Positions 2,495 through 63,063 of a DNA stretch of 64,000 nt are shown here, piece after piece (the stretch's first letter is position 1; every line of letters starts with the position of its first letter). A program made the translations under genes and the position numbers. This DNA is from Malacoraja senta (taxonomy: Eukaryota), in assembly GCA_038087875.1 (NCBI GenBank), contig JAXLNO010000618.1, forward strand, positions 124,001 through 188,000, in the 5' to 3' direction. The notes under the pieces were generated by a model. It ran no database searches. It was given only the letters and a program-made list of their open reading frames with translations, and was not told the DNA's origin.

Positions 2495-2717
2495 GTAGGC
2501 GAGCTCACTGCAGTCTCACTTCATGTCAAAGAATGGTTTAAAAGGTATCCACAAACTGAACAATGTTGGATGTCCTGTAAACTGTGGTTTATCACTCATT
2601 CAATCAGTTTGTTCCACTTTAGATTTGACAAGGGCATACACACTTTATTAATCTCGTTTTGCCTCCTTTGTTTCTCACAGCTAAATGACCAGCATATGCC
2701 ATTTTCCTACTGGTTTC

Positions 2718-2975: not shown

Positions 2976-3054
2976 AGTGCTGTACTCAATACAACATTTG
3001 CCAACTACCAATTTACTGATCCTTAGTCTAAAACTGCACCTTATTTCCAAACAG

Positions 3055-3154
3055 AGAATGCACAAAATGAGGCCGAGGTTTCTCTGCAGCAGTTTGCCAC
3101 TTGGTTTGATGTTCGGTTTCTTTGTTTTCCTGCTTCGACCTGTTTCCACACAGA
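3055..3154 (+). CDS. Leader exon, copy 1 ([32 protein letters not shown])
   Basis: Acceptor ttatttccaaacag|, ATG 3058, hydrophobic core, phase-1 donor CAGA|GTAAGT. Confidence 0.85.
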
Positions 3155-6100
3155 GTAAGTGCTTTCTCTTCGCTGGTCACAACCACCTTGCATTAATTAT
3201 CATTGTCCGTGTAAACCCGCACACATTGTCAATCTCGCTTTACTCTCCACGTCCATGAATGTGCTGCTGCCTCCAAATCCACACCATCCTTCCTGGACCT
3301 CCATTCCACATCCCTGTATGTGTTGCTGCCTCACAAATCCACACCATCCTTCCTGGACCTCCATTCCACATCCCTGTATGTGTTGCTGCCTCATAAATCC
3401 ACGCCATCCTTCCTGGACCTCCATTCCACATCCCTGTATGTGTTGCTGCCTCACAAATCCACGCCATCCTTGCTGGACCTCCATTCCACATCCCTGAATG
3501 TGCTGCTGCCTCACAAACCCACACCATCCTTCCTGGACCTCCATTCCACATCGCTGTATGTGTTGCTGCCTCACAAATCCACGCCATCCTTGCTGGACCT
3601 CCATTCCACATCCCTGAATGTGTTGCTGCCTCATAAATCCACGCCATCCTTCCTGGACCTCCATTCCACATCCCTGTATGTGTTGCTGCCTCACAAACCC
3701 ACACCTTCCTTCCTGGACCTCCATTCCACATCCCTGAATGTGCTGCCGCCTCACAAATCCACGCCATCCTTGCTGGACCTCCATTTCTGAGCCCATCCCA
3801 TCAACTCCCTCTCCTTCTCCTGCACCGACACGGTCCTTATCAAAGTCAGAAATGGGCTCCTGTGAGCTTGTTGCAGAGTTAGACTCTCCCTCCTCATCCC
3901 GCTCAGCCTCTGCAGCCTTTGACACGGTTGTCCACACCATCCTTCCCAACATATCCTCACCACAGTCCAGGTGGGTGGAACTGCCCTCGACTTATCGATC
4001 CAGTCGCAGCCCGAGAACCACGCACAATGTCTTCACTTCACGCTCCCACAAAGTTCCTTCAAAACCAGGTGGAGTTCCTCCACTACCCCAACACAACCCC
4101 CTATCCCCACCTACGTCTCCCTCCCTCCCACTCACTCACTTCTCTCATGTGATGAAATATCCCTGCATCAATCAGGCCAGGTTATTCCAGACGACATCTC
4201 TTCACAAACCGTGTCTTCCTCGCTGGGGTTTCCAAGGAAGATCACAACTGTCTGGAATTAAATTCAGTTCAAAATTAATGATTACAGATATGGGGTGGAT
4301 GGGGAAAATGTGTTTTAAATATTAATTCTTCATTGTTCGTATTCGCAACAGCAAATAGAAATCGAATGTATTTCTTGGATAATGGAGGCGACATTGTGTT
4401 AAACGGACAGGACAATGCTGAGAAAGACACTGTTGTTGCCTGGGAATGGAAACCACACTCAGGGAAGGAAATCGGAAAATTGTCGACTTTTAGAAGAACG
4501 GGGCGCGATTGGATCAAAGTGAAGGCCGCTGGCGAGAGTAAAGTGGACTTGTACCCGGAGATGAAAGTGTATTCCCGTACCCTTGATCTGACAATTGATA
4601 AACCCACATTTAAATGGGCGGGAATTTTCACTTTGGCTCAAACAGAACCGAGAAAGCAAATCCTGAAACAATATGAAATATTTGGGATGAAAGGTGAGTG
4701 GGAGCGATAAGGATCAATAATGTTTAATTTATCTCTGTAAATATTGTCACCTATAATGATGAGAGATGGCGGGAATTGTGAGACTTCTTCCACCCGGTGA
4801 AAAGTTAAACAACTGGGGAAGTGTTTTTGTTCATTGATTCTGTAATGATCAGCAGGGGTGATAATAGTTTGATGACTTCACTGGGAACAGCAAATCAATG
4901 AATCGACCCGCAGCGAATACCATGGTCTTCTTGCCTGCACACGGAAGGTGATCGCGGCAAGGTGGTATGGAACCAATGTCTCCATGCAGTGGCCCCGGGG
5001 TGACACTGCTACTTAATGTTACCCTGTGACCAGGTGGATGGAAGTCCATCGCCTGTGGAACATGGGCTCTGCCATAGAGTTCACCTCTTGAGAGCAATCA
5101 GATACACCTAGGAGTGGAAATAGATGCATTTTCAACAGTTTGTGAATATTTGAAACAGAGCATGTGTAAATACAACAACACCTGAATGTTGCCGGTTCCA
5201 CCTGCAGTCACACGGTAAACAGCCGGCATTTCGCTGCGTCAATGTGAGCAGCCACGGGTGTCAGGGTTCTGAGAGCACTTGGGGAGAAGTTGTTCTGACT
5301 TTCAGCTACGTGTCAGCTTTAAGCCCGGTTATTGGATGAACCATGACATCCGCACTCTTCTGAAGTCCAGATTCCGGGCATTCAGGTCTGGGGATGCAGT
5401 GGTCTACAAGAAGTTCAGATACGACCTTGGTAAGGCCATCAAAAGTCCAAAAGGGACTTCTGCTCCAAGCTGGAGGATGAGACGGATGTTCGGCAACTAT
5501 CTTAGGGCTTGAATGCCATCACCTCCTATAAAGGCAAATTCAGGATGTAGCTCAAATGTCAGCGAAACATCACTCCCTGACGAGCTCAATGCGTTCTATG
5601 CACGCTTTGATAGGGAGAACACCGATGTGCCTTCCCGAGCCCCCATTCGCTGTGATGGTATTTCAGTCTCAGTCACAGAGGCCGACGTCAGAAAATCCTT
5701 CAGAGGGGTGAACCCTCGATAAGCACCTGGACCTGATGGTATACCTGGTCGTGTTCTAAAAACCTGTGCGGACCAACTGGCTGGAGTTTTTACGGACATT
5801 TTCAACCTCTCACTTCTGAGGTCTGAGGTTCCCACCTGCTTTAAAAGGGCATCAATTATACCAGTGCCCAAGAAGAGTAAGGTGATGTGTCTCAATGACT
5901 ATCGACCTGTGGCACTAACACCTGTGGTGATGAAGTGCTTTGAAAGGTTGATCATGGCGCAAATCAACTCCTACCTCGACAAAAACCTGGACCCACTGCC
6001 GTTCGCTTACCGCCACAACAGATCAACGGTGGATGCGATCTCGCTGGCCCTCCACTCTGCTCTGGACCACTTGGACAACAAAAACCCATATGTCAGGCTG

Positions 6101-9100
6101 TTATTCATTGATTACAGCTCGGCATTTAATACAATCATCCCCTCCAAGCTGGTTACCAAACTCTCAGATCTGGGTCTCTGTGCATCCCTCTGCAATTGGA
6201 TCCTCGACTTCCTCATTCACAGACCATAGTCTGTTCGTATTGGTGGAAATGTGTCAGCCTCGATAACAATCAGCACGGGAGCACCTCAAGACTGCGTGCT
6301 CAGTCCCCTGCTGTACTCACTCTATACTCATGAGTGCGTAGCCGGACACAGTGCGAACTCCATCATCCAGTTCGCTGACGACACCACTGTTGTGGGACAA
6401 ATCACTGATGGAGACGAGTCAGAGTATAGAAGAGAGATCGAGCAACTGTCCATATGGTGCCAGCACAATAACCTGGCCCTCAACACCAGCAAAACCAAGG
6501 AATTGATTGTGGACTTTGGAAGGGGTAGGATGGGGACCCACATTCCCGTTTATATCAACGGGTCGATGGTGGAAAGGGTCAAGAGCTTCAAATTCCTGGA
6601 CGTGCATATTTCCGAAGATCACTCCTGGTCCCAGAACACTGATGCAATTATAAAGCAAGTACATCAGCGCCTCTACTTCATGAGCAGATTACGGAGAGTC
6701 GGTTTGTCAAGGAGGACTCTCTCTAACTACTACAGGTGCACAGTAGAGAGCATGATGACCGGTTGCATCGTGGCTTGGTTCGGCAACTTGAGTGTCCAGG
6801 AGCGGAAAAAGCTACAAAAAGTAGTAAACACTGCCCAGTCCATCATCGGCTCTGACCTCCCTTCCATCGAGGAGATCTATCGCAGTCGCTGCCTCAAAAA
6901 GGCTGGCAGCATCATCAAGGACCCACACCATCCTGGCCACACACTCATCTCCCCGCTACCTTCAGGTAAAAGGTACAGGACCCTGAAATCTGCAACATCC
7001 AGGTTCAGGAACAGCTGCTTCCCCACAGCCATCTGGTTATTAAACACAACTTCAAACAAACTCTGAACTATAACAGCCTATTGCACTTTATCTGTTTATT
7101 TATGTGTGCATATATGTATATATATTCTATGGTACATGGACACACTGATCTGTTCTGTATTTATGCCTACAATATTCTGTTGTGCTGCAGCAAGCAAGAA
7201 TGTCATTGTCCCATCTGGGACTTGACTTGTACAAACCACTACTCACTCTGAATCTCATTGATCTGTTTTTCACAGTTGAGGCAAGTCCACAGAGGCCTCT
7301 GCTGGGCAGTGACGTCACACTCAGCTGCACCATCTCCAGACTCTCAGATACAGTCAGTCTTCACTGGAGACCCATGGACTCATCCCAGCAGAACAGGAGC
7401 AACACTGATCAGATCCGCCTGGATAACACGGTCTATCTGATGGTTCAACACGTTACAGTGGGGGATGGGAAGCTGTATGTGTGTGATGTGCAGGAAAACG
7501 GAAACATTGTTCACACAAGTAATGGAGATTTTACTGTAGAGAACGGTGAGTGTAAACACCTCCCATTGGATATCAAGTAGACACTTGTATCACGGTGCTT
7601 CTTGTAATATTATGTGTGTGCCCTGTGAAGAACTGTGGCAGTGACCAACTGCTCTCTAGTATAAAATGCTGCAATGATCAGGGAGAAGTTTACAGAAAGT
7701 CTCTCTCTCTGTGGAGCAGCTGCCTGCTTGTCTCTGTGTGACAGACACACAGCACAGGAGGGGGATGTCTTTCTGTAACCATTCTTCTGTCAAGTATTTT
7801 GTCAGTTTATCTTGCCATCAATGCTCCAGTATCTGAGACTGAGATACTGATACAGGACTCATGTCAAAGTGTCAGATAGAAAGTGTAGTCACCATGACAA
7901 CCACCAGCACTTGCTGCTCACACTCACACTGGGGGTCCCGGCCCACACATCAGCACTGAACAACAATCCATCCCCTCTCCCCTCACTGACCCTTCTCTCC
8001 GAGTCTGGTGTTGCTTGAAGTGATTCCAGCTGCTGCAGACTCTGGCTTCGGATCAGCATTCAACTGGGAGCAGGACCCGGGAACAGGGAAGGACAGGGAA
8101 TCAATGGGTGTGAATGGGAGAGGGATGGTGGGAATTATGGGAATGAAGGGACGGGAAGACCCGACCCACTTGAAGTGCCAACCTGTCCGGGTCAGTCCCC
8201 ACGCAGGCATCCTCTGGGCTGCTTCTGTCCGCAGCCTGAACCTGCACCACCTCCTGCAGACAGACTGACAGAGACATTCACCTCCCAGACCGCTCTCGGG
8301 AGTCTCCGGGAGGTTTCATTCCATCCCGGGAGATTCCCGGACAGTCCGGGTGTGGGGGCGAACCGAATGTTGAAATGTAGAGTGGAATATCCAAACTTCA
8401 CTGCAATTTACTGCCGTACAGGACATTGTATTTTATAAAGATCTGATGAGTTTAGTGCGGCATTCATGAAAGATGTTACATTTGAAACTTGATCAGCTGA
8501 ACAAAACACCACGAATGTTTATAAGAATACGGTTGAGAATCTCTGTATGGCACGGTAACTGTAATACTGAAAGGAGTTATCCTCTGTCTCTCTGATACAG
8601 ATTTATATAGGGAGATATACACACTTTACCGCTCCAGCACAGATCACAGTGAACTTCACCTGGTTTGTTCTGTGAGTTATGGTGATAGCTATTCCCGTGC
8701 TGAGTGGACCTGGACACCTCATCACCTTCAACAACACAAAGTAATAGCATCTGCAAACCGTTCTCAGCCCATCAATGTCAAAGGGACCGACTTCAGGAAT
8801 CGACTGGTGACCTCAGGGAAACCCTTCGATGGCGAGGATTTCAGTGTGAGGATTGTCCCCGTTTTGTTTCAAGATGCCGGAGTTTACGCATGTTTTCTGG
8901 AATCATATCCATTTCTCACCATTGATCTAATCACAGTGAAAGGTACGAGACAGAATGTTGCCACTGAGTTTACTGATGAACTTATTGTTTAAAATGTAAA
9001 CAACCTGCTTGTTTCCACAGTCACAGCTGAACCGTCTGATGCAGTGACTGAGGGAGACACCGTTACCCTGACCTGCTCTGTGTCTCACGTCATTGGGTCA

Positions 9101-12100
9101 ATGAGACTGGTTTGGATCAATGGCGATGGCAAAAGTGTTGGAGAAAAGACACTGACTGTGGAAGAGAAATCACAGAGTCTGGTTATTCAGAAAGCTGAGA
9201 GAGGCAGAGGGAACTGGAGATGTGGTTTGTTTCATCAAGACCTGCCCCGGCTTTTTGTCCCGTACTATCAGGAGCCCCGTGGTAAGTGATAAGGGTTTGT
9301 TCTTCATACTTAGAGTCATGATTGAGTTTTGATGTCGCTTATTGATCCTGAAATTTGAGTGGAATATTTTCTTCCAGTTTGAGTAGTCTAACTGTTATGA
9401 TCAATGAATTCTCAAATTTCAAATAACACTTCCCGAACCCCACTTCTCCCCCCCCCTTCATTGTGCACGCATTTATCCCACCACCCAGTTATCCTATTCT
9501 CTTCCCTTCCTCTTTCAACTCATCTCCCACCCCTTCCAATTGCAGAGTTTTCCTTTTATGTTCTTGCTCCACTTCCACCCATATCCCTCCCTCTGTTACT
9601 GATCTGACTGTAGATCAGTCAGTATTAGTTGACCTGATCTATGTCATGTTTTACTGCATGCCGCTGTGTACTCAAACAGTCATCATATTATCTGGTCTGT
9701 TAGTCCAGCCTCTAGTTAGATTCGTTGCTGAGCTTGAGCTTACAACACCTAAGTATTTGAGCTCTGTGTGTTTACTATAACAAACAACTTCTTCTTATGT
9801 ATGGATCCTGTTATTACACATGTTTACACTGACAACCTTTTGTCTCCATTTCACCCCTCCATTTTGTCATTATCTCCATCCATCTACTCATCACCATTCC
9901 CCACCTGTATCCACCTATCACTCACCATGCTTTGTCTCGTGCCTACTTCCCTTCCCCAGTTGTCACTCTCCCATTCCATCAGTCTGAGAATGCATCCTGA
10001 CATGAAACGTCATCAATCCATTCCCTCCACAGATGCTGCCTGACCCATTGAGTTTCTCCAACACTTTGCGTTTGATCAACATTCCACAATCTGCAGTTTC
10101 TTGTGTCTCCATGGAGACCCACTGGTCAACGTGGACAGATTGCTGCAGAGGGCCTGTTTCCATGCTGTTCCATGATGATGAATTATAACGTACAACTTAG
10201 TAAAGATTAATTCTCTGCAATATTGCTACTGACAAGGTCAGTGAAAAATTATTGTCCAAAATTTACACATTTGTTCTCTTTTCCTACAGGAAGTGGACAT
10301 TATATGTACTTTTTCCATCAGGAAGGCAACTTTGTATTGAAAGGACCAGACAGTCCTGGAAATGGCCCCATTGACTTGGAATGGAGGCCACACTCAGGGC
10401 AACAAACCACAAAGCGATTGGCCACTTTCCACAGAGAAGATCAGCAGTGGGACGTACAATGGAGTGATGAGTACATTCAAATACCAGGCATTTCCCAGAG
10501 GATGCATGCGGACTGGGGTACCCTTAATCTGAGGATCAGGATGCCCACATTCAAACTTGCAGGACTGTTCACCTGGACTCAAACAGAGTCCGCTGGGAAA
10601 ATCCTGAGACAGTGGGAACTATTTGGGATCAAAGGTAATAGAGTCATAGTGTCACACAGCACTGAAACAGGCCCTTTGGCCCAATTCATCCATACTGACC
10701 AACTACCCATCTAAACATCCCATTTGCCCTCATTTGGCCCATATCCCTTCAACCTTTTTTCCATCTACCTGTTTAAATGCCCTTTAAATGCTGTACCTGC
10801 ATCAAACACTTCCTCTGCTCGATCTTTCCATAAAGTATGTTTAGGTACCACACTCTTTGTCAAAACTGCCCCTAATATTAAGGGGTATATCAAATCTGCC
10901 CCTCTCACCTTAAACATGTACTAACTAGTTGTTGATTCCCCAACCCTGGACAAAAGACCATGTGCGTTTACTATAGATATGCCTCTCATGATTTTATTCA
11001 CTCCCATATAATCTCTGTTAAAGACATCCAAGAAATATAATGTCTGAAGAAGGGTCTCAACCTGAAACGTCACCTATCCATGTTCGCTAGAGTTCAAAGG
11101 TCTTTTATTGTCACGTGTACCAATTAAGGGGCAGTGATATTCATATTAACAGACCTGCTGAATTACTCCTGCACTTTATGTCCTTTTATATATTAACCAG
11201 CATCTGCAGTTCTGTGTTTCTACTATACTAAAAACATCCCTACCTGGAAGTGTTGATGTGGGAGACGAGGGGGCGAGGGGGACAGGTCGTCACTACCAGG
11301 AAGTGTTGATGTGGGAGACGATGGGGCGAGGGGGACAGGTGGTCACTACCAGGAAGTGTTGATGTGGTAGACGAGGGGGTGAGGGGGACAGGTGGTCACT
11401 ACCAGGAAGTGTTGATGTGCGAGACGAGGGGGCGAGGGGGACAGGTGGTCACGACCAGGAAGTGTTGATGTGGGAGACGAGGGGGCGAGGGGGACAGGTG
11501 GTCACTACCTGGAAGTGTTGATGTGGGAGACGAGGGGGCGAGGGGGACAGATGGTCACTACCTGGAAGTGTTGATGTGGGAGACGAGGGGGCGAGGGGGA
11601 CAGATGGTCACTACCAGGAAGTGTTGAAGACATCACTGAGCACGGTAGCTCAACATTCAGCCGACTGTCTGTCTGCAGGAAAAAGACAATTCTGCCCACA
11701 GTAGTTCAGAAAGCTGTTGGTGAACTGAACCACATGTGTCTGTTTCCACAGTTGAGGCCGACTCACCGAGGCCAGTGATGGGCAGTGACATCACCCTCAG
11801 CTGTACCATCTCCAGACTCTCAGATACCATCAGTCTTCACTGGAAACCAAGAGGCTCATCTCAGCAGAACAGGAGGAGCAACACTGATCAAATCCATCTG
11901 AATAACGCCGTCTATCTGATGATCCAACATGTTGGAGCAGGAAATCCCAATCTGTACACATGGGAAGTGCAGGAAAATACCTCCATTGTTCTCACTGGAG
12001 ACTCCAATGTCGAAGTGGATCAGGGTGAGTCCAAAGCTGCCTTGCAGCAGGTATTAAATAGATCTTGATATCAAACTGTTCCACATGTTGTATAGTGAGC

Positions 12101-15100
12101 ACTGACTCCACCCGTGGGCTTCCACACTGCAGGATGTGGACATTGCCTTTACCCTGGGACATGGTGTAAATATAAAATGGTGGCACTAAGATTGATGGAG
12201 CAACACAGGAGAACCAAGGGATTCATTTCAGTTCACCTGTATGAATCAAAGAGAATAATATCCAGTGATGGAAATAACATCTAGTTTTCAGTGTATAACA
12301 GAACAGGAAAATATGAACTAATTCAAGTATAAATGCAGTGGAAATATCAGAATCAGAATCACATTTTATTGGCCACGTAATAATACACAGGGAATTTGAC
12401 AGTGCTTTGCTCGCATAAGGTAAAAACACGATATACAACAGACAATTAAAAATAAAACATTATAATTTAAACATGTGAAAATAAAGTACCTGAGTAAAAA
12501 GAGGCTACCGACTTTTGGCTGTTGAGTAGAGCTACGGCTCGTGGGAACAAGTTGTTTTTATGTCTGGCTGTGGCTGCTTTGACAATCAGGACTCACCTGC
12601 CAGAGGGAAGTGATTCAAAGAGTTTGTGGCCTGGGTGAGAGGGGTCAGAGATCATCTTGCCCGCTCACTTCCTGGCCCTTGCAGTGTACAGTTCATCAAT
12701 GGAGGGAATGTTGCAGCCAATAACCTTCTCTGCTGATCGGACGATTCGCTGCAGCCTCCAGGTATCGTGCTTGGTGGCTGAGCCAAACCAGACCATGATG
12801 GAGAAGGTGAGGACAGACTCTATGATGGTAGTGTAAAACTGGACCATCATTGCCTGTGGCAGGTTGTGTTTCCTCAGCTGCCGCAGGAAGTACATCCTCT
12901 GTTGGGACTTTTTGACTGTGGAGTCGATGGTGGCCTCCCAATTAAGGTTGCTGGAGATGATGATTCCGAAGAAATTAAATGACTCCACAGTTGTGACTGT
13001 GGTGTTGTTGAAGGTGAGTGGGGGAGGGGAGGGGGAGCTCTACAATCAGGAGGGGAGGATTGAGTCTACAATCAATTCCACTGTCTATAGAGCACTGAGC
13101 TTCAGGTTGTTACGATGTCAACAGGACACCAGCTTTATGATTAGGGTGACTTGGACATCGTGCTGAAGTAAGCATGCAGGTACAGCAGGCAATGGAGAAA
13201 GCAAATGGCATGTTGGCCTTCATAGCGAGATGATTTGAGTATAGGAGCAAAGAGATCCTACTGCAGGTGTACGGGGCCCTGGTGAGACCACACCTGGAGT
13301 ATTGTGTGCAGTTTTGGTCTCCTAGTTTGAGAAAGGACATTCTTGCTATCGAGGGAGTGCAGCATAGGTTCACCAGGTTAATTCCTGGAATGGCGGACTG
13401 ACATATGATGAAAGAATGGATCGATTGGGTATATATTCACTGAAATTTAGAAGGATGAGAAGGGATCTTATAGAAACGTATAAAATTATTAAGGGATTGG
13501 GCAGGCTAGATGCAGGAAAAATGTTCCCCATGTTGGGCGAGTCCAGAACCATGGGTCCCAGCTGACATCCCAGAGCCGGGGGTTTGTCCCTGTGGAAACT
13601 CACAACATTGTATCTCGGCGTGTGTGGAAATCTAATTCTTTGATCCCTGTCCCTCTCTTGCAGGTTTACATAACAAGACGTACACAGTTTATCGCTCAGT
13701 CACAGATCACAGTCAACTTGACCTGATTTGTGAAGCTTCTCCTGAGCTCATTGAAACCAAATGGACTTGGAGATCACCACGTTTCCAGAATCAAGAGAAG
13801 GAAATAGCTTCTTCTCACAGGTCTGGGCCGATACATGTCAACAGGAGCTACTTTGGGAATCGACTGGAAACCATAGAGGGAAATGTGAATGGCAAGAATT
13901 TCCATGTGAGGATTGTCCCCGTGCAGTTTGCAGATGCCGGAGTTTACACATGTTCCACGGGATCAAATATACATGTGACCATTGAACTAATCACAGTTAC
14001 AGGTAGGAGACTGGATGTTACTACTTTCAAGAATTAAGTTACTGGTGTAGAGTTTCTAATCTGAGTGCAGACTGCAATGTCAGCAGAAATTCCCAAGTTT
14101 GAAGAATTATTTTACCTCCAGAGCTTCCTCTTCAACTTATTTGTATTTTGCTGAACCCAAAATCTGCTCTAAACCAACATTATTGGGAAGCACATCAAAT
14201 GTTATTTTCATTTATTTTGCTGAAAACACATTGTTTTATACATAAGAGGGGGAATATGATGAAATGTGATTCACAAAGGTGCAAATGAGCTTCTATCGAA
14301 AATATTTAAAAATCATTCAACTTCTCTTAATACATTCCCCAAGTTTCTTTGACCCCAAACGACCCATCCTAATTTTTGAAGGCTCACTGGACGCTTAAAA
14401 CTGAGTGTATTTTGTGGAATTTATCGATTAATATTTACCTGGATGAGTGTTGTGGCCAAAACTGTGGCCAGAGACAATGATGTGGGCATTGGTTGCTCTT
14501 TGTATAATTAGTTCAAAACTGTTGTGAATGATTATGGAAAAGACACTTGGAGAGGTACATGGATGGGAAAGGTGCAGAGGGATATGGGCCAAATGTGGGA
14601 ACATATTTTAGATGGAGCATCTTGGTCAGCATGGATGAGTTGGGCTGAATGGACCGAATTGTTTCATGCTGTGTGACTATGCCTCTAACTCTTGTTGTGT
14701 AATATAATTTTCCACACTTAGAACGCCAGATACTGGTGTCAAAGTACTGAGAAAAATACAACACAATCCAGACAAAATTCATTGTTTTACGATTTTCTTC
14801 TTTCCACAGTCACAACTGAACCATCTAGCGCAGTGACTGAGGGAAGAAACATTACCTTGACCTGCTCTGTGTCTCATGTCACTGAGTCAATAAGACTGGT
14901 TTGGATCAATGATGAAGGCAAAGTTGTAGAGCAGAAAAATCTCATTCAAACAAAGCAGGAGAACAATTCTTTGCAGCTGATTATTGCAATAGCTGATGGA
15001 GTAAGAAGGAAATGGACATGTGGTTTGTTTCATCAAAGCACAGCCAAGGTTTCCATTCCATATAATCTGCAGGTGAACAGTAAGTTTCTTAGCTTCTGCT

Positions 15101-18100
15101 CTTCGTTATCTCGACACAGAGTTCTTGTCACGTTGCTATTCTTTTTGGATAACTTTTAACATTTCATGTCTTACTGCAAGTAGAGCTCAATCATAGACAT
15201 TTCCTGCAAACCTCTTGTCCATGCCTATAAGGTCACTTCTATTGTAAGTAGTCCAGGTCTCTGAAGCACATGGGAGCACATGGATCACTACTGCTGGCAG
15301 ACCACTGACCAAGTCCTATGTTGGCCATCTCATTGAAGGTGATCGGGAATTTCATCATCAATGTCTGTCCTTGTTGATAAGGGTCTCCACAGGTATGAAA
15401 ACTGGTCCAGTAGTATGAAAACCAGTGTGTCACTGTGAACCTTTTTGACAGAGGTCAGTATAGTAAGGTGGGCAGCTTGGTGGAAGATCTTTGCCATAAC
15501 ACCCAAACTGTGCCCCTTAAAGATCACAAAAGTAGTGAAAATCATCTTACAAATAGTTGTACAAGTTTCTTTCCCCTGTTCTGATGCTGTAAAACATTAC
15601 AGCGGTTGAAGCATCCACAGTAACTTCACCAAAGGCTGCCGTGTGAGAACAGAAGATGTGGGGGAGGGAATACTGATGTCTTCACCTTGTCTGACCATGG
15701 TGGCGCGGTGGTAGGGTTGCTGCCTTACAGCGCCAGGGACCCGGGTTCAATCCTGACTACAGGTGCTGTCTGTATGGAGTTTGTACCTTCATCCCGTGCC
15801 CTATGTGGGTTTTCACGAGGATTTCCGGTTTTCTCCCAAATTCCAAAGATGAACAAGTCTGTAGGTTAATAGGCTTGGTTTAATTGTATGTTGTCCCTGG
15901 TGTGTGTAGGATAGTGTTAGTCTGTGGGAATCGCTGGTTGGTGTGGACTCGGCGAGCCGAAGGGCCTGTTTCCGCGCTGTATCTCTAAACTAAACACGCC
16001 CTTTCCTCCCAATCCCACCCATCCATTAATCCCTGCCCTTCATGTGGCCCCAAGCCTCGGTGAAAGACATTTTGTACAATGCTGACAGAAGGCAAAGCAC
16101 TGATCCCTAACAGAGGAAGATCCTGTAAACACCCAGGCACAAAGAAACAATCTCCACCACACATAGATCAATGAAGAGTCAGTGAAGCACAGTGGAAAGT
16201 ATCAATGTCCCAACAGAAACATTTTAATTCCTCACAGATAATCACATCATCCAATCATAGAATTGTGGAATGGTTGTAGCACAGAAGGTGGCCATTTGAC
16301 CCATCATATCCATGCTAACTCTCATCCAGAGCAACTCGCTAATTCTACCCCCTCTCCTTTTGCCATTACATTGCAGCTTTTTCATCACTATATATTTCTC
16401 CAATTCTCTCTGGAAAGCCACGATAGAACCCAGCTCCCCAACTGATGCAGACAGTACACTTCAGACTCCAACTGCCTGCTGCCTAAAAAGATTTTCCTCA
16501 AGTCATTCTAACATGTTTTCCCCTTTATTTTAAACCTATAACTTTTTGTGCTCAGCCTTTCCACTGAAGGGAGCATCCTTCCACAATCCATTCTGTTCAG
16601 ACTGAATAAATGATGCATAAATGAACAATTATGCCATTGTGCAGATAACTATTAATGACTATGATATAGTTGGGATCACGGAGACATGGCTCCAGGGTGA
16701 CCAAGGCTGGGAGCTGAACATCCGGGGATATTCAATATTCAGGAGGGATAGACAGAAAGGAAAAGGAGGTGGGGTAGCGTTGCGGGTTAGAGAGGAGATT
16801 AACACAATAGAAAGGAAGGACATTAGCTTGGAGGATGTGGAATCGATATGGGTAGAGCTGCGAAACACTAAGGGGCAGAAAACACTAGTGGGTGTTGTGT
16901 ACAGGCCACCTAACAGTAGTAGTGGAGTTGGGGATGGCATCAAACAGGAAATTAGAAATGCGTGCAACAAAATAAAACAGTTATAATGGGTGACTTCAAT
17001 CTACATATAGATTGGGTGAATCAAATTGGCAGGGGTGCTGAGGAAGAGGATTTCTTGGAATGTATGCGGGATAGTTTTCTAAACCAACATGTAGAGGAAC
17101 CAACGAGAGAGCAGGCTATTCTAGACTGGGTATTGAGTAATGAGGAAGGGTTAGTTAGCAGTCTTGTTGTGCGTGGCCCCTTGGGCAAGAGTGACCATAA
17201 TATGGTTGAGTTCTTCATTAGGATGGAGAGTGACATTGTTAATTCAGAAACAAGGGTTCTGAACTTAAAGAAAGGTAATTTTGAGGGTATGAGACGTGAA
17301 TTTGCCAAGATTGACTGGCAATTGATTCTTAAAGGGTTGACGGTGGATATGCAATGGAAGGCATTTAAAGACTGCATGGATGAACTACAAAAATTGTTCA
17401 TCCCAGTTTGGCAAACGAATAAATCAGGGAAGGTAGTGCATCCGTGGATAACAAGGGAAATCAGGCATAGTATCATAACAAAAGATAAAGCGTACAACTT
17501 AGCCAGAAAAAGCAGCCTACCAGAGGACTGGGAGGAATTCAGAGTCCAGCAGAGGAGGACAAAGGGCTTAATTAGGAAAGGGAAAATAGATTATGAAAGA
17601 AAACTGGCAGGGAACATAAAAACTGACTGCAAAAGATTTTATAGATATGTGAAGAGAAAGAGATTAGTTAAAACAAATGTAGGTTCCTTGCAGTCAGAAA
17701 CAGGTGAATTGATCATGGGGAACAACGACATGGCAGACCAATTGAATAACTACTTTGGTTCTGTCTTCACTAAGGAAGACATAAATAATCTGCCGGAAAT
17801 AGCAGGGGACCGCGGGTCAAATGAGATAGAGGAACTGAGTGAAATCCAGGTTAGCCGGGAAGTGGTGTTAGGTAAATTGAATGGATTAAAGGCCGATAAA
17901 TCCCCAGGGCCAGATAGGCTGCATCCCAGAGTACTTAAGGAAGTAGCCCCAGAAATAGTGGATGCATTAGTGATAATTTTTCAAAACTCCTTAGATTCTG
18001 GAGTAGTTCCTGAGGATTGGAGGGTAGCTAATGTAACCCCCTTTTTAAAAAGGGAGGGAGAGATAAAACGGGGAATTACAGACCAGTTAGTCTAACATCG

Positions 18101-21100
18101 GTAGTGGGGAAACTGCTAGAGTCAGTTATTAAAGATGGGATAGCAGCACATTTGGAAAGTGGTGAAATCATTGCACAAAGTCAGCAAGGATTTACGAAAG
18201 GTAAATCATGTCTGACGAATCTTATAGAATTTTTCGAGGATGTAACAAGTAGAGTGGATAAGGGAGAACCAGTGGATGTGTTATATGTGGACTTTCAGAA
18301 GGCTTTCGACACGGCCCCACATAAGAGATTAGTATACAAACTTAAAGCACACAGTATTGGGGGTTCAGTGTTGATGTGGATAGAGAACTGGCTGGCAAAC
18401 AGGAAGCAAAGAGTAGGAGTAAACGGGTCCTTTTCAGAATGGCAGGCAGTGACTAGTGGGGTACCGCAAGGCTCAGTGTTGCGTCCCCAGCTATTTACAA
18501 TATATATTAATGATTTGGACGAGGGAATTGAATGCAACATCTCCAAGTTTGCGGATGACACGAAGCTGGGGGGCAGTGTTAGCTGTGAGGAGGATGCTAG
18601 GAGGCTGCAAGTTGATTTGGATAGGCTGGGTGAGTGGGAAAATGCATGGCAGATGCAGTATAATGTGGATAAATGTGAGGTTATCCACTTTGGTGGCAAA
18701 AACAGGAAAGTAGACTATTATCTAAATGGTGCCCGATTAGGAAAAGGGGCGATGCAACGAGACCTGGGTGTCATGGTACACCAGTCATTGAAAGTAGGCA
18801 TGCAGGTGCAGCAGGCAGTGAAGAAAGCGAATGGTATGTTAGCATTCATAGCAAAAGGATTTGAGTATAGGAGCAGGAAGGTTCTACTGCAGTTGTACAG
18901 GGTCTTGGTGAGACCACACCTGGAGTATTGCGTACAGTTTTGGTCTCCAAATCTGAGGAAAGACATTCTTGCCATAGAGGGAGTACACAGGTTCACCAGA
19001 TTGATTCCTGGGATGTCAGGACTTTCATATGAAGAAAGACTGGATAGACTCGGCTTGTACTCGCTAGAATTTAGAAGATTGAGGGGGGTTCTTGTAGAAA
19101 CTTACAACATTCTTAAGGGATTGGACAGGCTAGATGCAGGAAGATTGTTCCCGATGTTGGGGAAGTCCAGGACAAGAGGTCACAGTTTAAGGATTAAGGG
19201 GAAATCCTTTAGGACCGAGATGAGAAAAACCTTTTTTCACACGGAGAGTGGTGATTCTCTGGAACTCTCTGCCACAGAAGGTAGTTGAGGCCAGTTCATT
19301 GCCTATATTTAAGAGGGAGTTAGATGTGGCCCTTGTGGCTAAAGGGATCAGAGGGTATGGAGAGAAGGCAGGTACAGGATACTGAGTTGGATGATCAGCC
19401 ATGATCATATTGATTGGCGGTGCAGGCTCGAAGGGCCGAATGGCCTACTCCTGCACCTATTTTCTATGTTTCTATGATGTGATGAAAGAGCATTATTGAC
19501 TCTTGTCTTCAAACTCTCTCTTCAGTGTGCCATGGTAATAACTGGACAGAGAACAGCCATTAAAAGAATCTCAATTATACCAGCCATGTTTACTGTTTAG
19601 TTTAGAGATACAGCGCGGAAACAGGCCCTTCGGCCCACCGGGTCCACGCCAACCAGCGATCCCCGCATAATAACACTATCCTACACCCACTAGGGACAAT
19701 TTTTACATTTACCATGCCAATTAACCTACAAACATGTACCTCTTTGGAGTGTGGAAGGAAACAGAGGATCTCGGAGAAAACCCATGCAGGTCCCGGGGAG
19801 AAAGTACAAACTCCGTACTGACAGCACCCGTAGTCGGGATCGAGCCCGGGTCTCCGGCGCTGCATTCACTAAGGCAGCAACTCTACCGCTGCGCCACCGT
19901 GCCGCATTCATTGTGTCATCTCTTTGTGACATGTTTATAGTTTGACTTGCCGATTCAACTGCTTCAATGCACCATCTGATGTGATTATTTGACTGAACAC
20001 AGCAACCTGCTCCCTGATGGTCACTGTGTGCTTAAGGTTGGTGTTATTAATCCTTACTCCTGGCGAGCAGCAGTCTCCCCCTGGCAGAAGACAACAGGGC
20101 TCTGACTATAGTCGGCTGAGAGTCCACTGAGGAATGAAGGCTTTGGTTGTCCTCTGCCTGTGCCTCAGTGCCAGTAAAACCCTGCTCCGTCAGCCGCTGC
20201 ACCAAGGGAGAGGCCACCCCAACCCACACCGACCCCACTGTGGTGTCCCCACCTCCCAGATTGGAAATCTGTGCTCCCGGCTGAGCAGAAGCCTCCCCAT
20301 GTACGCTCATCAACACAGTCTCACTATGGAGCAGAACTGAAGTTGAACTTTATTTTACAAGGGTCGCGCACACCAGCCTCTCCATCCTTTGGCCTCATTG
20401 CAGACTGATGCTTTTGGGTGTTGAGCTGTCCTTAGAGGGCAGGACATATCAATCAGTGAGTGAATAGATTAGTTGGTGTGTGGAATTAATGCATGGATCA
20501 ACCATCTCCAATTTTACACTAAAAACACATGAAGTTGTGCTCATTAGGATTGCAATAATAATGTGTTCAACCTCATTGACATCAGTAGGCAATGGTTACA
20601 TGCACAATACAGTTTTAGTACTTGAAGACCAAAATTAATTTTAGGAGTTGAAAATCGGAATTAAAAATAATAATAATAATCAGCAGGACAGATAGGAACT
20701 GTGAAAGAGGAACAAGTCCAGCCATGATCGCATTAAATGGCGGTGCTGGCTCGAGGGGCTGAATGGCCTACTCCTGCACCTATTGTCTATTGGCAAAGAT
20801 CCTTTCTTTGAATCTGACAATGTTTTATTCATCATAAAACATGAACTCACTTCTTTCCCTTTCCACGGATACTGCTCAAACGGCTGAGTATTTGTAACGT
20901 TTACAGTTCTTGTGCTCCTGGTTAGAGAGGATTGAAGCTGGAGGGCAATATCCACTCTGTTGTCAGCAGTGTTCATTCAACCATTGTTCCAGGCTTAGAC
21001 TTTGATAGACATTTGTCCACTGTACAGTGGGAAGTGTCACAGCTGAATCAGCTACTTTATCAACCAACCATCAGCTCCCATCTCCTGCCTGAGAAATGTC

Positions 21101-21917
21101 AGCTGATTGTAACCAAGAAATAGAAACTTGTGTGAATGTTTACAGTCTCTAACTGATGGCTACTGAGGCAAGTTGTGGCTCTCTGATCTTTGTGAGTAAG
21201 GTTAATTAATCTGGGGAAAAAAAGACACAATGTGCTGGAGTAACTCAACGGGTCAGGCGGAATCTCTGGAGAACATGGATAGGTGAGGTTTTGGATCTTG
21301 ACCCTACTTCAGACTAAAGGGCTGCGACCCGAAATATCACCTGCCTAACCTGCTGAGTTTCTCCAACACTTTGTGTCTTTTATTGGTAAACTCTCATCTG
21401 CAGTACCTTGTGTCTCAGTGAATCTGGATCACAAGTTAAACTCAAGACTTCTGATCTAAATTAGTCAGTGTGGTTAATGCCTGGTCTTTGGGGGAGCTTT
21501 TGAATGATGTCCATTTATTCTACAAATGCGAACTCTGTGTTTATTATTTTGACAGGGAATTATACTTTTATATACATCATTGTTGGAATTATCGGGAGTC
21601 TGGCTGTTCTCATCGTCATTATACTGGCAGTGGTGTGGTGTCAAAGAAAGCGCAAGCCTACAGGTAAAGTACATGAAGACATCCTTAATGCAGCACAGAT
21701 TCCCCAAATTATCAATGACAATGTTATCATTGTTACAAGGAGAAAAGAACAATATATTTTGGATAAGAAAAGTATCTGTTTGTGCATATGTTGTTGAGAA
21801 ATTGATTTCAGACTTTTTGTGTTCAATTAAAGCATTATTTATGCAATGTGGATTGTCTACCTACCTGCGTTGCCATGAGGAGTCTGCTGTATGATTTCAG
21901 GTGCTGTTCTGCAATGA
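3058..21917 (+). CDS. Multi-exon type I membrane receptor with eight Ig domains, (V*-C2-V-C2)x2, CD4/LAG-3-like; copy 1, about 887 aa
   Basis: Eleven exons join with GT-AG boundaries, all phase 1, with no internal stop (97+342+270+342+261+345+273+339+270+108+17 = 2664 nt). Signal peptide, Ig motifs, a hydrophobic TM helix and a basic stop-transfer motif are present. The family assignment rests on V-C2-V-C2 order and WxC F-strand motifs and is less certain than the exon structure. Confidence 0.82.
3246..3785 (+). repeat. 60-bp minisatellite, 9 copies
   Basis: Unit ccattccacatccctgtatgtgttgctgcctcacaaatccacgccatccttcctggacct; explains ORFs 3200-3952, 3240-3767 and 3320-3790. Confidence 0.95.
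3790..4150 (+). mobile_element. Old L2-type LINE reverse transcriptase fragment
   Basis: Degenerate TDTVLIKV...[12 protein letters not shown]...GGTAL resembles L2 TETALxKV...LSAAFDTVDH...GTAL; frameshifted; duplicate near 59320-59690. Confidence 0.6.
4352..4693 (+). CDS. Ig domain 1 exon (V-like, no cysteines)
   Basis: Acceptor gcaacag|, donor AAAG|GTGAGT, phase 1/1. Contains DIVLNG, WEW and WAGIFTL at the B, C and F strand positions; homologous to domain 5. Confidence 0.88.
5300..7250 (+). mobile_element. 5'-truncated Rex1/Babar-type LINE in the D1-D2 intron
   Basis: RT motifs [35 protein letters not shown](D)[12 protein letters not shown] and FADDT, with stops and frameshifts. Confidence 0.88.
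7276..7545 (+). CDS. Ig domain 2 exon (C2)
   Basis: Acceptor tttttcacag|, donor AACG|GTGAGT; VTLSC...LHW...LYVC. Confidence 0.92.
8601..8942 (+). CDS. Ig domain 3 exon (V)
   Basis: Acceptor ctgatacag|, donor AAAG|GTACGA; LVC...WTW...DAGVYAC...DLITVK. Confidence 0.92.
9021..9281 (+). CDS. Ig domain 4 exon (C2 with WxC)
   Basis: Acceptor gtttccacag|, donor CGTG|GTAAGT; VTLTC...LVW...NWRC. Confidence 0.92.
10290..10634 (+). CDS. Ig domain 5 exon (V-like, no cysteines; paralogue of domain 1)
   Basis: Acceptor ttcctacag|, donor AAAG|GTAATA; shares MYF, EWxPHSG, PTFKxAGxFT, QTE and FGxK with domain 1. Confidence 0.88.
11240..11627 (+). repeat. 53-bp G-rich minisatellite, 7 full copies plus a partial
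   Basis: Unit ctaccaggaagtgttgatgtgggagacgagggggcgagggggacaggtggtca with a 53-nt period. Confidence 0.95.
11752..12024 (+). CDS. Ig domain 6 exon (C2; paralogue of domain 2, F-strand Cys replaced by Trp)
   Basis: Acceptor gtttccacag|, donor CAGG|GTGAGT; [13 protein letters not shown]...LYTW. Confidence 0.9.
12355..13040 (-). mobile_element. Rex1/Babar-type LINE 3' fragment
   Basis: Minus ORF 12665-12988 ([15 protein letters not shown]...[14 protein letters not shown]) resembles the C-terminus of the 5300-7250 element. Confidence 0.75.
13150..13553 (+). mobile_element. CR1 LINE fragment
   Basis: Matches the ORF2 C-terminal region of the long CR1 copies (ctggtgagaccacacctggagtattg). Confidence 0.85.
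13664..14002 (+). CDS. Ig domain 7 exon (V; paralogue of domain 3; not in the supplied ORF track)
   Basis: Acceptor ctctcttgcag|, donor ACAG|GTAGGA. Hand translation is open: [35 protein letters not shown]...DAGVYTC...ELITVT. Confidence 0.9.
14810..15079 (+). CDS. Ig domain 8 exon (C2 with WxC; paralogue of domain 4)
   Basis: Acceptor tttccacag|, donor AACA|GTAAGT; ITLTC...LVW...KWTC. Confidence 0.92.
15695..15995 (+). mobile_element. tRNA-derived SINE (HE1-like)
   Basis: Head ggtggcgcggtggtag...ccgggttcaatcc; tail gggcctgtttccgcgctgtatctctaaactaaac. Confidence 0.8.
16639..19476 (+). mobile_element. 5'-truncated CR1 LINE in the D8-TM intron
   Basis: Endonuclease (GITETWL, GVVYRPP, MGDFN) and RT ([17 protein letters not shown]) motifs, frameshifted; tttctatg tail. 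Confidence 0.95.
19595..19903 (-). mobile_element. tRNA-derived SINE (HE1-like)
   Basis: Reverse complement of the SINE at 15695. Confidence 0.8.
21556..21663 (+). CDS. Transmembrane exon ([35 protein letters not shown])
   Basis: Acceptor ttattttgacag|, donor ACAG|GTAAAG, phase 1/1; about 23 hydrophobic residues followed by C-QRKRK. Confidence 0.9.
21901..21917 (+). CDS. Probable last coding exon (GAVLQ-stop)
   Basis: Acceptor atgatttcag|, phase matches the TM exon, followed 50 nt later by AATAAA; alternative tails are possible. Confidence 0.55.
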
Positions 21918-21972: not shown

Positions 21973-23139
21973 CATGCCAGAAGATGAAGTATAGCTAGTG
22001 TAGTCATGTAGAAAATATGGTCTCCAATTTGCCCTCAACATGTTCCTATTTACTGAGGGATGAAGATTGGCCAGGAAACCAGGAGACCAAGGTATCTCCA
22101 CTGCACTTTGGTGATTCACGTTCCAAAATCTATTGTGTCCCAAGAGGCCAGAAGGGGCCTCAGTTAAACAAATAATCTTTAATCTGGTGAGGCCAATGCT
22201 CCAACAATCCCACATGGCAACAGAGTGTTAGGCTCAACTGTGTGTTCAAATTTGGGGTTGTGCCTGCGGGTTTATTCTGTGTTGTTGAACAAACTGATCA
22301 GACGGGTATCGGGCTAGTACAACAGTTCATCAAGGTCACTGACACATGGAATACTCAATTCTTAAAGCTTCCCTTATATTTATATAAATCAACATTTTTT
22401 TCCCATTAAAAAAATAAACCATTCCAATAACTGATCATTAGAAATATAAAATTACACGTTGAATATATTAACTGTGTGTACAATTATAAATTCAGTTGCT
22501 CCTTTACTTGTCATCTTGACTTGTGAAAACTCTGCAGTGCAAAGATGCATTTGTCCACTCTCCAGATATTTTCAACTCTGCTAGATACCTCCACATGTTG
22601 GCCTTACCTCATTCATGGTCTCCTGTGCCTTCCCACCCATGTTCTGTCCAGCAATGGCTCTATTGTGGAATCCTTACCGTAACTCAAATCCATGCTCATC
22701 CTGTACCTCATATTCTCCATCACCATCTTCTTGGGCATCCTGTCCATGTAACACATGATCTATCCATGTAATTTGACTTCTGTCACCCATTCCCATCATT
22801 GCACCACCATTTTATTCACAATATTTTTCCTGAACTGAATCCGAATTCTCAGATTATCAAATAGGATTTAAACCTGTGCTTCTGGACTATTAATCTCAAA
22901 GAGTCTTGGATTAATATCCAGTTAACCTATGACAATCCAAAAGTACATCAAAGTAAGCAAACTAAATAATGTACCCATTAACAGGAGTCAGCACAACACA
23001 TTTGAAAGTAAGTTGGAGAGAAACACATCACCAATTCTAAATCTGGTAATGTTGGGAAAAGTTAATTACATATTGTGTTTATCATATTTGTGGAAAACGG
23101 AGTTAATGGAATCTCTATTGTGTTTTGTTCAATGTGTGA

Positions 23140-27500: not shown

Positions 27501-27625
27501 TAAAACAAAAAACTATGTTTTAATAAGACCAATAACCAAGTTGTGTTTGCTTCTAGAAGGCGAAGGTGAAGATGGAAGAGTCGATGAAGGGCCATGATTG
27601 CGGATATATAGTGCATGCTATTTTT

Positions 27626-27700
27626 TCCTCGTTAGTATCGTGTTTAGTATCCCTGCCTGTCACGCGTTAGACCGGGGTTCAATTTGCCGACGAGGAGCCA
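27626..27700 (+). tRNA. tRNA-Asp(GTC) pseudogene with 3' CCA inside the BEL element
   Basis: 72-nt TCCTCGTTAGTATCGTGTTTAGTATCCCTGCCTGTCACGCGTTAGACCGGGGTTCAATTTGCCGACGAGGAG then CCA; anticodon GTC at tRNA positions 34-36; close to vertebrate tRNA-Asp as I recall it, with stem-breaking changes. Confidence 0.85.
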
Positions 27701-28069
27701 CAGGGTTTAATTCCCTGACCTTTTGCTTTTGATATATGTATAGCCTTTATGGCCATTTTTTAAATGTTTATTAGTAATTGCCTCATTAGATACTCGGAAC
27801 AATTAGGAGCCGGTATGTAGTGGCCATTTGGCCTGTTTTGCATGTCACTGATGATGGCATGTGCCTTTAAATTTTAGACTGCCCGTTGTATTGTGGGTGG
27901 GATTTATGACGTGTTTTTAGGCGTGTTTGGAGCTTAGATGCTTGCGCAGAAGTCTAGTTTTTAGATTAGTTTGGAGAGACGATGGAGAAGGTCAATCATT
28001 CGACCATGTCAATGTTACGGAGACACGAGGAGTTTTGTAATGTTTAAAGTTGCAAGTTGGAATTGAAGG

Positions 28070-59066: not shown

Positions 59067-59166
59067 AGAATGCACAAAATGAGGCCGAGGTTTCTCTGCA
59101 GCAGTTTGCCACTTGGTTTGATGTTCGGTTTCTTTGTTTTCCTGCTTCGACCAGTTTCCACACAGA
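59067..59166 (+). CDS. Leader exon, copy 2
   Basis: ATG 59070; same peptide as copy 1; donor GTAAGT at 59167. Confidence 0.85.
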
Positions 59167-62100: not shown

Positions 62101-63063
62101 GAGCTTCAAATTCCTGGGCGTGCATATTTCTGAAGATCTCTCCTGGTCCCAGAACACTGATGCAATTATAAAGTGAGCTCATCAGCGCATCTACTTCCTG
62201 AGAAGATTACGGAGAGTCGGTTTGTCAAGGAGGACTCTCTCGAACATTTACAGGTGCACAGTAGAGAGCATGCTGACTGGTTGCATCGTGGCTTGGTTCG
62301 GCAACTTGAGCGCCCAGGAGCGGAAAAAGCTACAAAAAGTAGTAAACACTGCCCAGTCCATCATCGGCTCTGACCTCCCTTCCATCGAGGGGATCTATCG
62401 CAGTCGCTGCCTCAAAAAGGCTGGCAGCATCATCAAGGACCCACACCATCCTGGCCACACACTCATCTCCCCGCGACCTTCAGGTAGAAGGTACAGGACC
62501 CTGAAATCTGCAACATCCAGGTTCAGGAACAGCTGCTTCCCCACAGCCATCTGGTTATTAAACACAACTTCAAACAAACTCTGAACTATAACAGCCTATT
62601 GCACTTTATCTGTTTATTTATGTGTGCATATATGTATATATATTCTATGGTACATGGACACACTGATCTGTTCTGTATTTATGCCTACAATATTCTGTTG
62701 TGCTGCAGCAAGCAAGAATGTCCTTGTCCCATCTGGGACTTGACTTGTACAAACCACTACTCACTCTGAATCTCATTGATCTGTTTTTCACAGTTGAGGC
62801 AAGTCCACAGAGGCCTCTGCTGGGCAGTGACGTCACACTCAGCTGCACCATCTCCAGACTCTCAGATACAGTCAGTCTTCACTGGAGACCCATGGACTCA
62901 CCCCAGCAGAACAGGAGCGACACTGATCAGATCCGCCTGGATAACACGGTCTATCTGATGGTTCAACACGTTACAGTGGGGGATGGGAAGCTGTATGTGT
63001 GTGATGTGCAGGAAAACGGAAACATTGTTCACACAAGTAATGGAGATTTTACTGTAGTCAACG
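59070..63063 (+). CDS. Copy 2 of the Ig receptor gene, 5' part only (leader, domains 1-2); continues beyond the window
   Basis: Exons 59067-59166, 59887-60228 and 62794-63063 have the same lengths, phases and splice sites as copy 1 and are open. Confidence 0.85.
59887..60228 (+). CDS. Ig domain 1 exon, copy 2
   Basis: 342 nt, open, 12 amino-acid differences from copy 1. Confidence 0.88.
60840..62770 (+). mobile_element. Rex1/Babar-type LINE, duplicate copy
   Basis: Same position in copy 2; ORF 61049-62176 with GAPQGCVLSP and KFADDT; different lesions from copy 1. Confidence 0.88.
62794..63063 (+). CDS. Ig domain 2 exon, copy 2
   Basis: 270 nt, open, 3 amino-acid differences from copy 1. 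Confidence 0.9.

Follow-up and report, generated by a model that had tools for sequence, protein, structure and literature searches.

An eight-domain immunoglobulin-type receptor gene of Malacoraja senta with an anciently doubled four-domain module that resembles CD4 and LAG-3 in predicted structure

Results

Ten exons predict an eight-domain type I membrane protein

We analysed a stretch of 64,000 nucleotides of Malacoraja senta DNA (contig JAXLNO010000618.1, positions 124,001-188,000, forward strand), hereafter called the window, whose numbering is used throughout, as it was in an earlier reading of the same DNA (the first-pass annotation). The locus is predicted to encode a type I membrane protein of about 904 amino acids, composed of a signal peptide, eight immunoglobulin (Ig)-like domains (D1-D8), one membrane span and a short tail. 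Its ten plus-strand exons at 3058-21663, which are listed below, carry the leader, D1-D8 and the transmembrane segment in open frames with AG acceptors and GT donors, and all of their junctions are in phase 1, as is usual for genes of the Ig superfamily. The spliced frame, with 2.6 kb of coding sequence, contains no internal stop.

3058..3154, + strand: exon 1, start codon and signal peptide, ending in phase 1 (open reading frame and GT donor; aligns with orthologue leaders; a 100% identical leader in the copy at 59070)
4352..4693, + strand: D1, the membrane-distal domain, V-like and lacking a cysteine pair (splice sites; D1 of the orthologue modelled as a V-type sandwich)
7276..7545, + strand: D2, C2-like, with the canonical Cys...YxC pair (LYVC) (splice sites, generic Ig model match, alignment)
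8601..8942, + strand: D3, V-set with a disulfide pair (Pfam V-set, E=4e-5; splice sites)
9021..9281, + strand: D4, C2-like, with WxC (NWRC) on strand F (splice sites, generic Ig match, alignment)
10290..10634, + strand: D5, paralogue of D1 at 43% identity (splice sites, alignment, tblastn)
11752..12024, + strand: D6, paralogue of D2 at 62% identity, with Trp in place of the second Cys (LYTW) (splice sites, alignment)
13664..14002, + strand: D7, paralogue of D3 at 49% identity, V-set (Pfam V-set, E=8e-7; splice sites)
14810..15079, + strand: D8, paralogue of D4 at 52% identity, with WxC (KWTC) (splice sites, generic Ig match, alignment)
21556..21663, + strand: transmembrane exon, its span without a charged residue, ending RKRKPT in phase 1 with the donor GTAAAG (aligns with the transmembrane exons of relatives)

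Pfam recognised D3 and D7 as V-set domains and D2, D4, D6 and D8 through generic Ig models, while D1 and D5, from both of which the cysteine pair is absent, gave no Pfam match. Eight-domain proteins in RefSeq can be aligned with the predicted protein over its full length (residues 4-883) and are 59-83% identical to it, the closest being the products of LOC129701495 and LOC129701496 of the little skate. Ten exons of the eleven-exon model in the first-pass annotation are retained; the eleventh, to which we return with the 3' end of the gene, is without homology support.

Duplication of a four-domain exon block within the gene

The first-pass annotation had described D1/D5, D2/D6, D3/D7 and D4/D8 as paralogous pairs and had found no leader or transmembrane exon between D4 and D5, and our comparisons bear out both observations. 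Cognate domains share 43, 62, 49 and 52% of their amino acids, respectively, versus 19-33% for non-cognate pairs; tblastn connects the cognate pairs at E values of 1e-18 to 1e-34, and at the DNA level the cognate repeats are 71-84% identical. The pairing of D1-D4 with D5-D8 is confirmed as far beyond chance.

That D1-D4 and D5-D8 might instead be two adjacent four-domain genes wrongly joined is suggested by the existence of four-domain members among the relatives described below and by an Amblyraja protein (P0070) in which a module of the inner, membrane-proximal type stands right after the N-terminus. However, the 1-kb intron between D4 and D5 contains neither leader-like nor transmembrane-like sequence nor a hydrophobic stretch, and the phase-1 junctions remain in frame across it. 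Moreover, the orthologues run from D4 straight into D5 with the same junction as the window gene, and this junction recurs across 14 genera in about 30 models, one of them a nurse shark entry in UniProt. Since these observations argue against two genes, we regard a false join as extremely improbable; the data support a single gene that arose from a duplicated V-C2-V-C2 exon block and whose eight Ig domains follow the order V-C2-V-C2-V-C2-V-C2.

A receptor family in which the doubling predates the shark-ray split

A profile of the D1-type domain found only 36 representatives among 1.84 billion proteins, and these belong to sharks, rays, a chimaera, sturgeon, eel and loach, nearly all under the name 'uncharacterized'. 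Further searches brought in many more members from sharks and rays and added paddlefish and bichir to the range; the relatives in bichir, sturgeon and paddlefish have four domains, and those in eel and loach are matches of the D1 profile in gene models. We assembled a family set of 162 proteins and classed their domains as types A to D. The order ABCDABCD is present in 30 of these proteins and was verified in 14 genera of sharks and rays; the nurse shark UniProt entry V9NJF3, labelled 'obscurin-like protein', is likewise an eight-domain member. Other members have the architectures ABCD, ABD, ACD, AB or ABCDA, a variety which indicates that the family shuffles whole domain exons, and in several species the members carry runs of consecutive LOC numbers. 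The five-domain ABCDA form was seen in Heterodontus (P0003), Narcine (P0002) and Rhincodon (P0060), and in the Heterodontus protein the A-type V-like domain directly precedes a transmembrane segment that bears a lysine. At the other extreme, three models have about 12 domains and one catshark model has 15 domains with a single transmembrane segment. These models (P0001, which is S. canicula XP_038652085 with 1710 amino acids, P0120, P0123 and P0124) combine 12-15 Ig domains with one transmembrane segment and a tail carrying an immunoreceptor tyrosine-based inhibitory motif (ITIM), and represent either genuine receptors of giant size or gene models that were fused.

The age of the doubling was read from a maximum-likelihood tree of 56 four-domain modules. 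All inner modules (D5-D8) fall into one clade (support 100/97), and the outer modules (D1-D4) together with several four-domain proteins form its sister clade (95/99); outside these two clades lie the four-domain proteins from chimaera, sturgeon, paddlefish and some sharks. Because the inner and the outer clade each hold sharks as well as rays, roughly in species order, the doubling is older than the shark-ray split and has persisted ever since. Every inner module examined (19 of 62 rows in the module alignment) has the change of Cys to Trp seen in D6. We conclude that the window gene is neither CD4 nor LAG-3 itself and belongs to a large, unnamed family of receptors that has expanded in sharks and rays. 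Thus, the lone offshoot of CD4 and LAG-3 that the first-pass annotation had proposed gives way to one member of a large multigene family with an old and conserved doubling.

Two types of tail in the family

Most full-length eight-domain relatives have a cytoplasmic tail in which HLYSN...EIQ and (E/D)Y(M/A)xV elements are accompanied by an ITIM (IHYGSIxF) and a terminal VIYAQI that resembles an ITIM or an immunoreceptor tyrosine-based switch motif (ITSM). With two such ITIM-type tyrosine motifs, IHYxSIxF and VIYAQI, typical members have the appearance of inhibitory receptors. ITIM-type tails, with the consensus (S/I/V/L)xYxx(I/V/L) as in IHYGSI and VIYAQI, were counted in 67 of the 162 family proteins; the window gene lacks this consensus, its tail ending before the first tyrosine. 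A further feature, expected of activating counterparts, is present at the family level: 23 of the 162 relatives combine a lysine in the membrane span with a short tail, and tandem gene copies stand in the window. Judged by these motifs, the coexistence of ITIM-tailed forms and forms with a transmembrane lysine would be what typically marks families of paired inhibitory and activating receptors.

The 3' end of the window copy and its tandem duplicate

The following features, all on the gene's strand, bear on the end of the gene and on its duplication.

24688..24755, + strand: likeliest last coding exon, a homologue of the first cytoplasmic exon in the family (relatives' tails as tblastn queries, best E 2e-5; frame check)
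22538..22584, + strand: unsupported alternative terminal exon, reading CICP and then SRYFQL (phase-1 acceptor of moderate quality)
24788..28069, + strand: long terminal repeat (LTR) retroelement of Pao/BEL type (LTR direct repeats and Pfam-recognised open reading frames)
59070..63063, + strand: start of a tandem paralogue with its leader at 59070, D1 at about 59887-60228 and D2 at about 62794-63063, running past the window end (tblastn identity 100%, 89% and 97%)

The exon at 24688 has a strong pyrimidine-rich acceptor, and the homologous exon extends to 24786. In the window copy, however, a TAA at 24753-24755 occupies the position of the Tyr codon of the HLYSN motif found in relatives, and since this stop stands where the relatives have their tyrosine, the copy appears tail-less, with a predicted 22 residues past the transmembrane exon. 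A tblastn and motif search of the 34 kb between 24.8 kb and the next gene copy did not find ITIM exons. One to two nucleotides past the cytoplasmic exon begins the Pao/BEL element, whose LTRs (24788-25041 and 27816-28069, 254 nucleotides each, 97% identical) enclose open reading frames for Peptidase_A17, RVT_1 and DUF5641; as the first base of the LTR is the T of the exon's GT donor, the insertion lies exactly at the exon-intron border. Two other endings were tried and rejected. The eleventh exon of the first-pass annotation (21901-21917, + strand, five codons and a stop) is open and in phase, and showed no homology to any relative by tblastn; a read-through tail past the transmembrane exon likewise had no homology. 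A CxCP tail such as the exon at 22538 would provide occurs in none of the 162 family proteins, and with gene copies that are 95-96% identical even in their introns, conservation of such an exon between them carries no information on function.

The gene is itself part of a tandem duplication, 1-8492 recurring at 55525-64000, a period of about 56 kb. Introns and flanks of the two units are 95-96% identical, which points to a recent expansion of the cluster. Between the two copies D1 differs at 12 of 113 residues, in two clusters, and D2 at 3 of 89, and the ratio of nonsynonymous to synonymous changes (dN/dS) is about 1.15 in D1. The changes in D1 fit a ligand-facing, fast-changing outer domain, the counts being small.

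With its intact ectodomain and with neither an ITIM nor a charged transmembrane residue, the window copy would be a variant of non-signalling, decoy or co-receptor type, or else a copy that is starting to decay, as the stop at the first motif tyrosine, the LTR at the exon end and the failure to find ITIM exons downstream indicate. The same three observations, along with a dN/dS of about 1 in D1 and D2, can be read more severely, namely that the copy is a young pseudogene whose ectodomain is open only because the duplication is recent. This reading does not sit well with ten exons (2.6 kb of coding sequence) that are open with intact splice sites, nor with amino acid changes that are clustered in two D1 loops rather than scattered; in addition, short-tailed members without ITIMs are predicted as whole genes in other species. 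We therefore hold a young pseudogene to be rather doubtful.

Predicted structure of the four-domain module

Structure prediction, which the first-pass annotation had proposed as a check, was run on D1-D4 of the closest orthologue (AlphaFold2, 62 aligned modules) and gave CD4 and LAG-3 as the nearest structures. The model has a predicted local distance difference test score (pLDDT) of 89.5 and a predicted template modelling score (pTM) of 0.86, and its strands 95-110 and 298-314 cross the borders between V and C2 domains. When the PDB was searched with Foldseek, the top seven matches were LAG-3 or CD4 (E 1e-18 to 4e-15, template modelling (TM) scores 0.30-0.39), followed by unrelated chains at E values of 7e-15 or worse and TM-scores of about 0.2. 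In the Swiss-Prot AlphaFold library the top 17 places all went to LAG-3 or CD4, with IGSF3 and Ly-9 behind them, and the alignments covered all four domains (CD4 residues 25-392, LAG-3 residues 27-424). VIA-align gave a Z of 17.4 for CD4 and of 13.7 for D3-D4 of LAG-3, and placed D3-D4 of the module on D3-D4 of rat CD4 with a Z of 15.9 at 2.5 Å over 169 of 177 residues; a structure search independent of Foldseek again ranked rat CD4 D3-D4 first among 48,161 chains. CD4 and LAG-3 thus came out on top in four independent structure searches. Each module has the V-C2-V-C2 order, and the cross-border strands in the predicted model of the orthologue suggest that each V-C2 pair forms a stiff rod with a strand running across the domain boundary.

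At the sequence level, a family profile run against the PDB sequences matched LAG-3 at E=2.5e-10, with the ITV junction and the WxC aligned, among generic Ig matches. The WxC motifs that the first-pass annotation had pointed out in D4 (NWRC) and D8 (KWTC) are both present, and at this site on strand F the family modules have W in 58 of 62 and C in all 62. A D2-type WxC is absent, D2 reading LYVC and D6 LYTW, with YxC in 43 and YxW in 19 of the 62 modules across the family. A CD4-type Cx(C/H) or LAG-3-type (F/Y)xxL(D/E) tail is likewise wanting: the homology-supported tail of the window gene has neither, and CxCP occurs in 0 of 162 relatives. The Pfam profiles PF05790, PF09191 and PF12104, which we take to be the curated CD4 profiles, did not match the window domains or four relatives even at E up to 10. 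D1 by itself had no match among the PDB sequences at E up to 10 when a three-sequence profile was used, and an ESM Atlas look-up returned only meaningless bacterial and viral neighbours (score 0.64). The likeness to CD4 and LAG-3 therefore comes from predicted structure, sequence alone being ambiguous, and it suggests that these two are the nearest known structural relatives of the module, which is less than proven membership. Of the earlier proposal of a CD4/LAG-3 offshoot with an extra doubling, the doubling and the structural nearness stand, while several family-defining features are missing.

Could the gene nevertheless be a true third CD4/LAG-3 lineage, an MHC (major histocompatibility complex) class II-binding co-receptor with a CxCP tail supplied by the exon at 22538-22584? 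CD4 and LAG-3 are its best structural matches, WxC stands in both D4 and D8, the V-C2 junction aligns with that of LAG-3, and the phase-1 exon encoding CICP and SRYFQL lies 0.9 kb past the transmembrane exon. However, a tail of this kind is found in none of the 162 relatives and the conserved cytoplasmic exon lies elsewhere, at 24688; D2 and D6 lack WxC, and the CD4 Pfam profiles are silent. Furthermore, CD4 and LAG-3 proper have already been identified in sharks, with Cx(H) and FxxL(D/E) tails and with WxC in D2 and D4 (PMC10768021). Taken together, these points make such a lineage quite improbable.

A second possibility is that the resemblance to CD4 and LAG-3 is a product of convergence or merely generic and that the family is nearer to CEACAM or CD2/SLAM-type receptors. 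The top match among PDB sequences is in fact CEA (E=3e-14), and NCBI names one isoform CEACAM5-like. The absence of a disulfide from D1 recalls the N domain of CEACAM and the V domains of SLAM, D1 overlays the V domain of NTB-A with a Z of 12.6, and Ly-9 appears at rank 19. Both families also share repeated domain blocks and ITIM or ITSM tails, and the pattern of IHYxSIxF plus VIYAQI presumably resembles the tails of CEACAM1, CD33 and SLAM. Ly-9 (SLAMF3) is alike in having V-C2-V-C2 by internal duplication, a cysteine-less first V domain and tyrosine switch motifs in its tail; CEACAM members (CEA with N-A1-B1-A2-B2-A3-B3, CEACAM1-L with two ITIMs) are alike in their cysteine-less N domain, repeated blocks, multigene cluster and ITIM tails. 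The CEA score, however, is a sum over many repeated domains, and in every structure search Ly-9 and all entries for CEACAM and Siglec rank below CD4 and LAG-3 (TM 0.22 for Ly-9 versus 0.33-0.39). The CEACAM layout of a cysteine-less V domain followed only by C2 domains is not that of the window gene, where two internal domains, D3 and D7, are of the V-set and have a disulfide, a domain type that CEACAM lacks. From the SLAM side, D1 would fit, whereas D3 has a disulfide where both SLAM V domains are without cysteines, the C2 domains have one disulfide where those of SLAM have two, and position -2 of the tail motifs is V or I and not T. An origin nearer to CEACAM or SLAM is in our judgement unlikely.

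Repeats and flanks

Apart from family copies the window contains only repeats, and no genes of the CD4/LAG-3 region were found in it; in four relatives queried, those flanks that could be read showed no neighbour gene within 10 kb.

16621..19285, + strand: long interspersed nuclear element (LINE) with endonuclease and reverse transcriptase, in the intron between D8 and the transmembrane exon (Pfam Exo_endo_phos_2 and RVT_1)

LINE reverse transcriptase/endonuclease reading frames at 5273-7066, 16621-19285, 28767-30884 and 61049-62176 all lie on the gene strand, three of them in introns, and the one at 28767 is an open frame of 705 amino acids. Intron 1 contains a minisatellite (3246-3785) with nine copies of a 60-bp unit, an array that is shorter in the second gene copy, and the D5-D6 intron contains another (11240-11627) with 7.3 copies of a 53-bp unit. 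C-rich satellites in the intergenic space (40169-41058, 34 copies of a 26-bp unit; 42265-46822, 134 copies of a 34-bp unit) account for its strong negative GC skew. A weak leader-like match at 49904-49951, located between the two gene copies (56% over 16 residues, E=0.009), is probably due to chance.

Discussion

Taken as a whole, the observations are in our view quite likely to be explained by an eight-domain type I receptor that arose by an ancient doubling of a CD4/LAG-3-like module, that belongs to a paired-type receptor family, and of which the window holds a tail-less copy. Several points weigh against this explanation. The modelled orthologue is 83% identical to the window protein overall and 73% in D1. 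Against four-domain CD4 and LAG-3, Foldseek gave TM-scores of no more than 0.30-0.39, low because the D2-D3 hinge differs, and the Z margin over single V domains is small (15.9 versus 14.2); the CEA match mentioned above is better by sequence than that of LAG-3. An AlphaFold2 model of all eight domains had low confidence (pLDDT 65, pTM 0.42) and is too weak for the D4-D5 hinge or the overall shape to be read from it. The splice junctions and the 3' end of the window gene are predictions from genomic DNA, ITIM function and the pairing with adaptors are read from sequence motifs only, and the tail-less state could mark the window copy as a pseudogene.

The basic unit of the family is the four-domain module, whose four exons were duplicated in tandem to give the eight-domain form at a time when sharks and rays had not yet separated. 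In the inhibitory forms, as the tail motifs suggest, binding of a ligand at the variable outer D1 would lead to recruitment of SH2 phosphatases, whereas the activating forms, with a lysine in the span and a short tail, would recruit an acidic adaptor. The window copy, which is presumably expressed, has kept an intact ectodomain and lost the signalling tail.

Among known systems, the closest parallel to the module is that of CD4 and LAG-3 themselves. Shared with them are a V-C2-V-C2 module of two rigid rods, the WxC on strand F of D4 and D8, an ITV-type V-C2 junction and, as in CD4 and LAG-3 of sharks (PMC10768021), one phase-1 exon per domain with no internal intron in D1. In contrast to them, the module is present twice here and three or four times in some models; WxC is absent from D2 and D6; D1, and not D3, is the domain without a disulfide; the CD4 Pfam profiles do not match; and the tails are of ITIM type or the span has a lysine, where CD4 and LAG-3 have Cx(C/H) or FxxL(D/E), in a multigene family with paired forms. 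Zebrafish CD4-2.2 (cited in PMC10768021) is another CD4-family molecule that was lengthened by internal duplication of a V-C2 block. However, it is secreted and has five Ig domains, of which D4-D5 are a recent, lineage-specific copy of D1-D2 (PMC10768021), whereas the duplication described here is ancient and spans four domains. In their organisation, KIR, LILR, Siglec, the NITR and LITR of fish and the MDIR of skates are similar to this family, being clustered multigene families with ITIM-bearing and charged-transmembrane forms and with exon-shuffled domain numbers, but their domain types differ. The domains of skate MDIR are CD300/pIgR-like (PMC3031540), and no protein named MDIR was among the matches of the family searches; identity of the family with MDIR seems unlikely.

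A bolder version, which we put forward very tentatively and think more apt to be wrong than right, is that the family is a third ancient branch beside CD4 and LAG-3 that has kept paired inhibitory and activating forms. The module would then have begun in an innate-type paired family, and cartilaginous fish would use 'double' to 'quadruple' CD4-like receptors of 8-16 domains, which would possibly read MHC class II or related ligands.

The first-pass annotation knew of no described eight-domain member. A literature search found no published description of the family, of its CD4/LAG-3-like fold, of its paired tails or of the conserved doubling, and the family thus appears undescribed in the searchable literature. 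The window gene is, however, not new as a database object, since eight-domain proteins are already in RefSeq and UniProt under the labels 'uncharacterized' or 'obscurin-like'. The window copy alone is also the less remarkable part, as one among many and with its signalling tail lost.

So far CD4 and LAG-3 have stood by themselves as a pair, and little is clear about their origin apart from a presumed duplication of V-C2. A large family with the same four-domain rod architecture would give this pair its first plausible relatives and, being present in cartilaginous and early-branching ray-finned fish with ITIM tails and charged-transmembrane partners, would tie the CD4/LAG-3 module to the logic of innate paired receptors. 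The eight-domain form raises the question of which ligand geometry needs a receptor about twice the length of CD4, a question that the 12- and 15-domain models sharpen. The unnamed family as a whole is thus open ground for comparative immunology.

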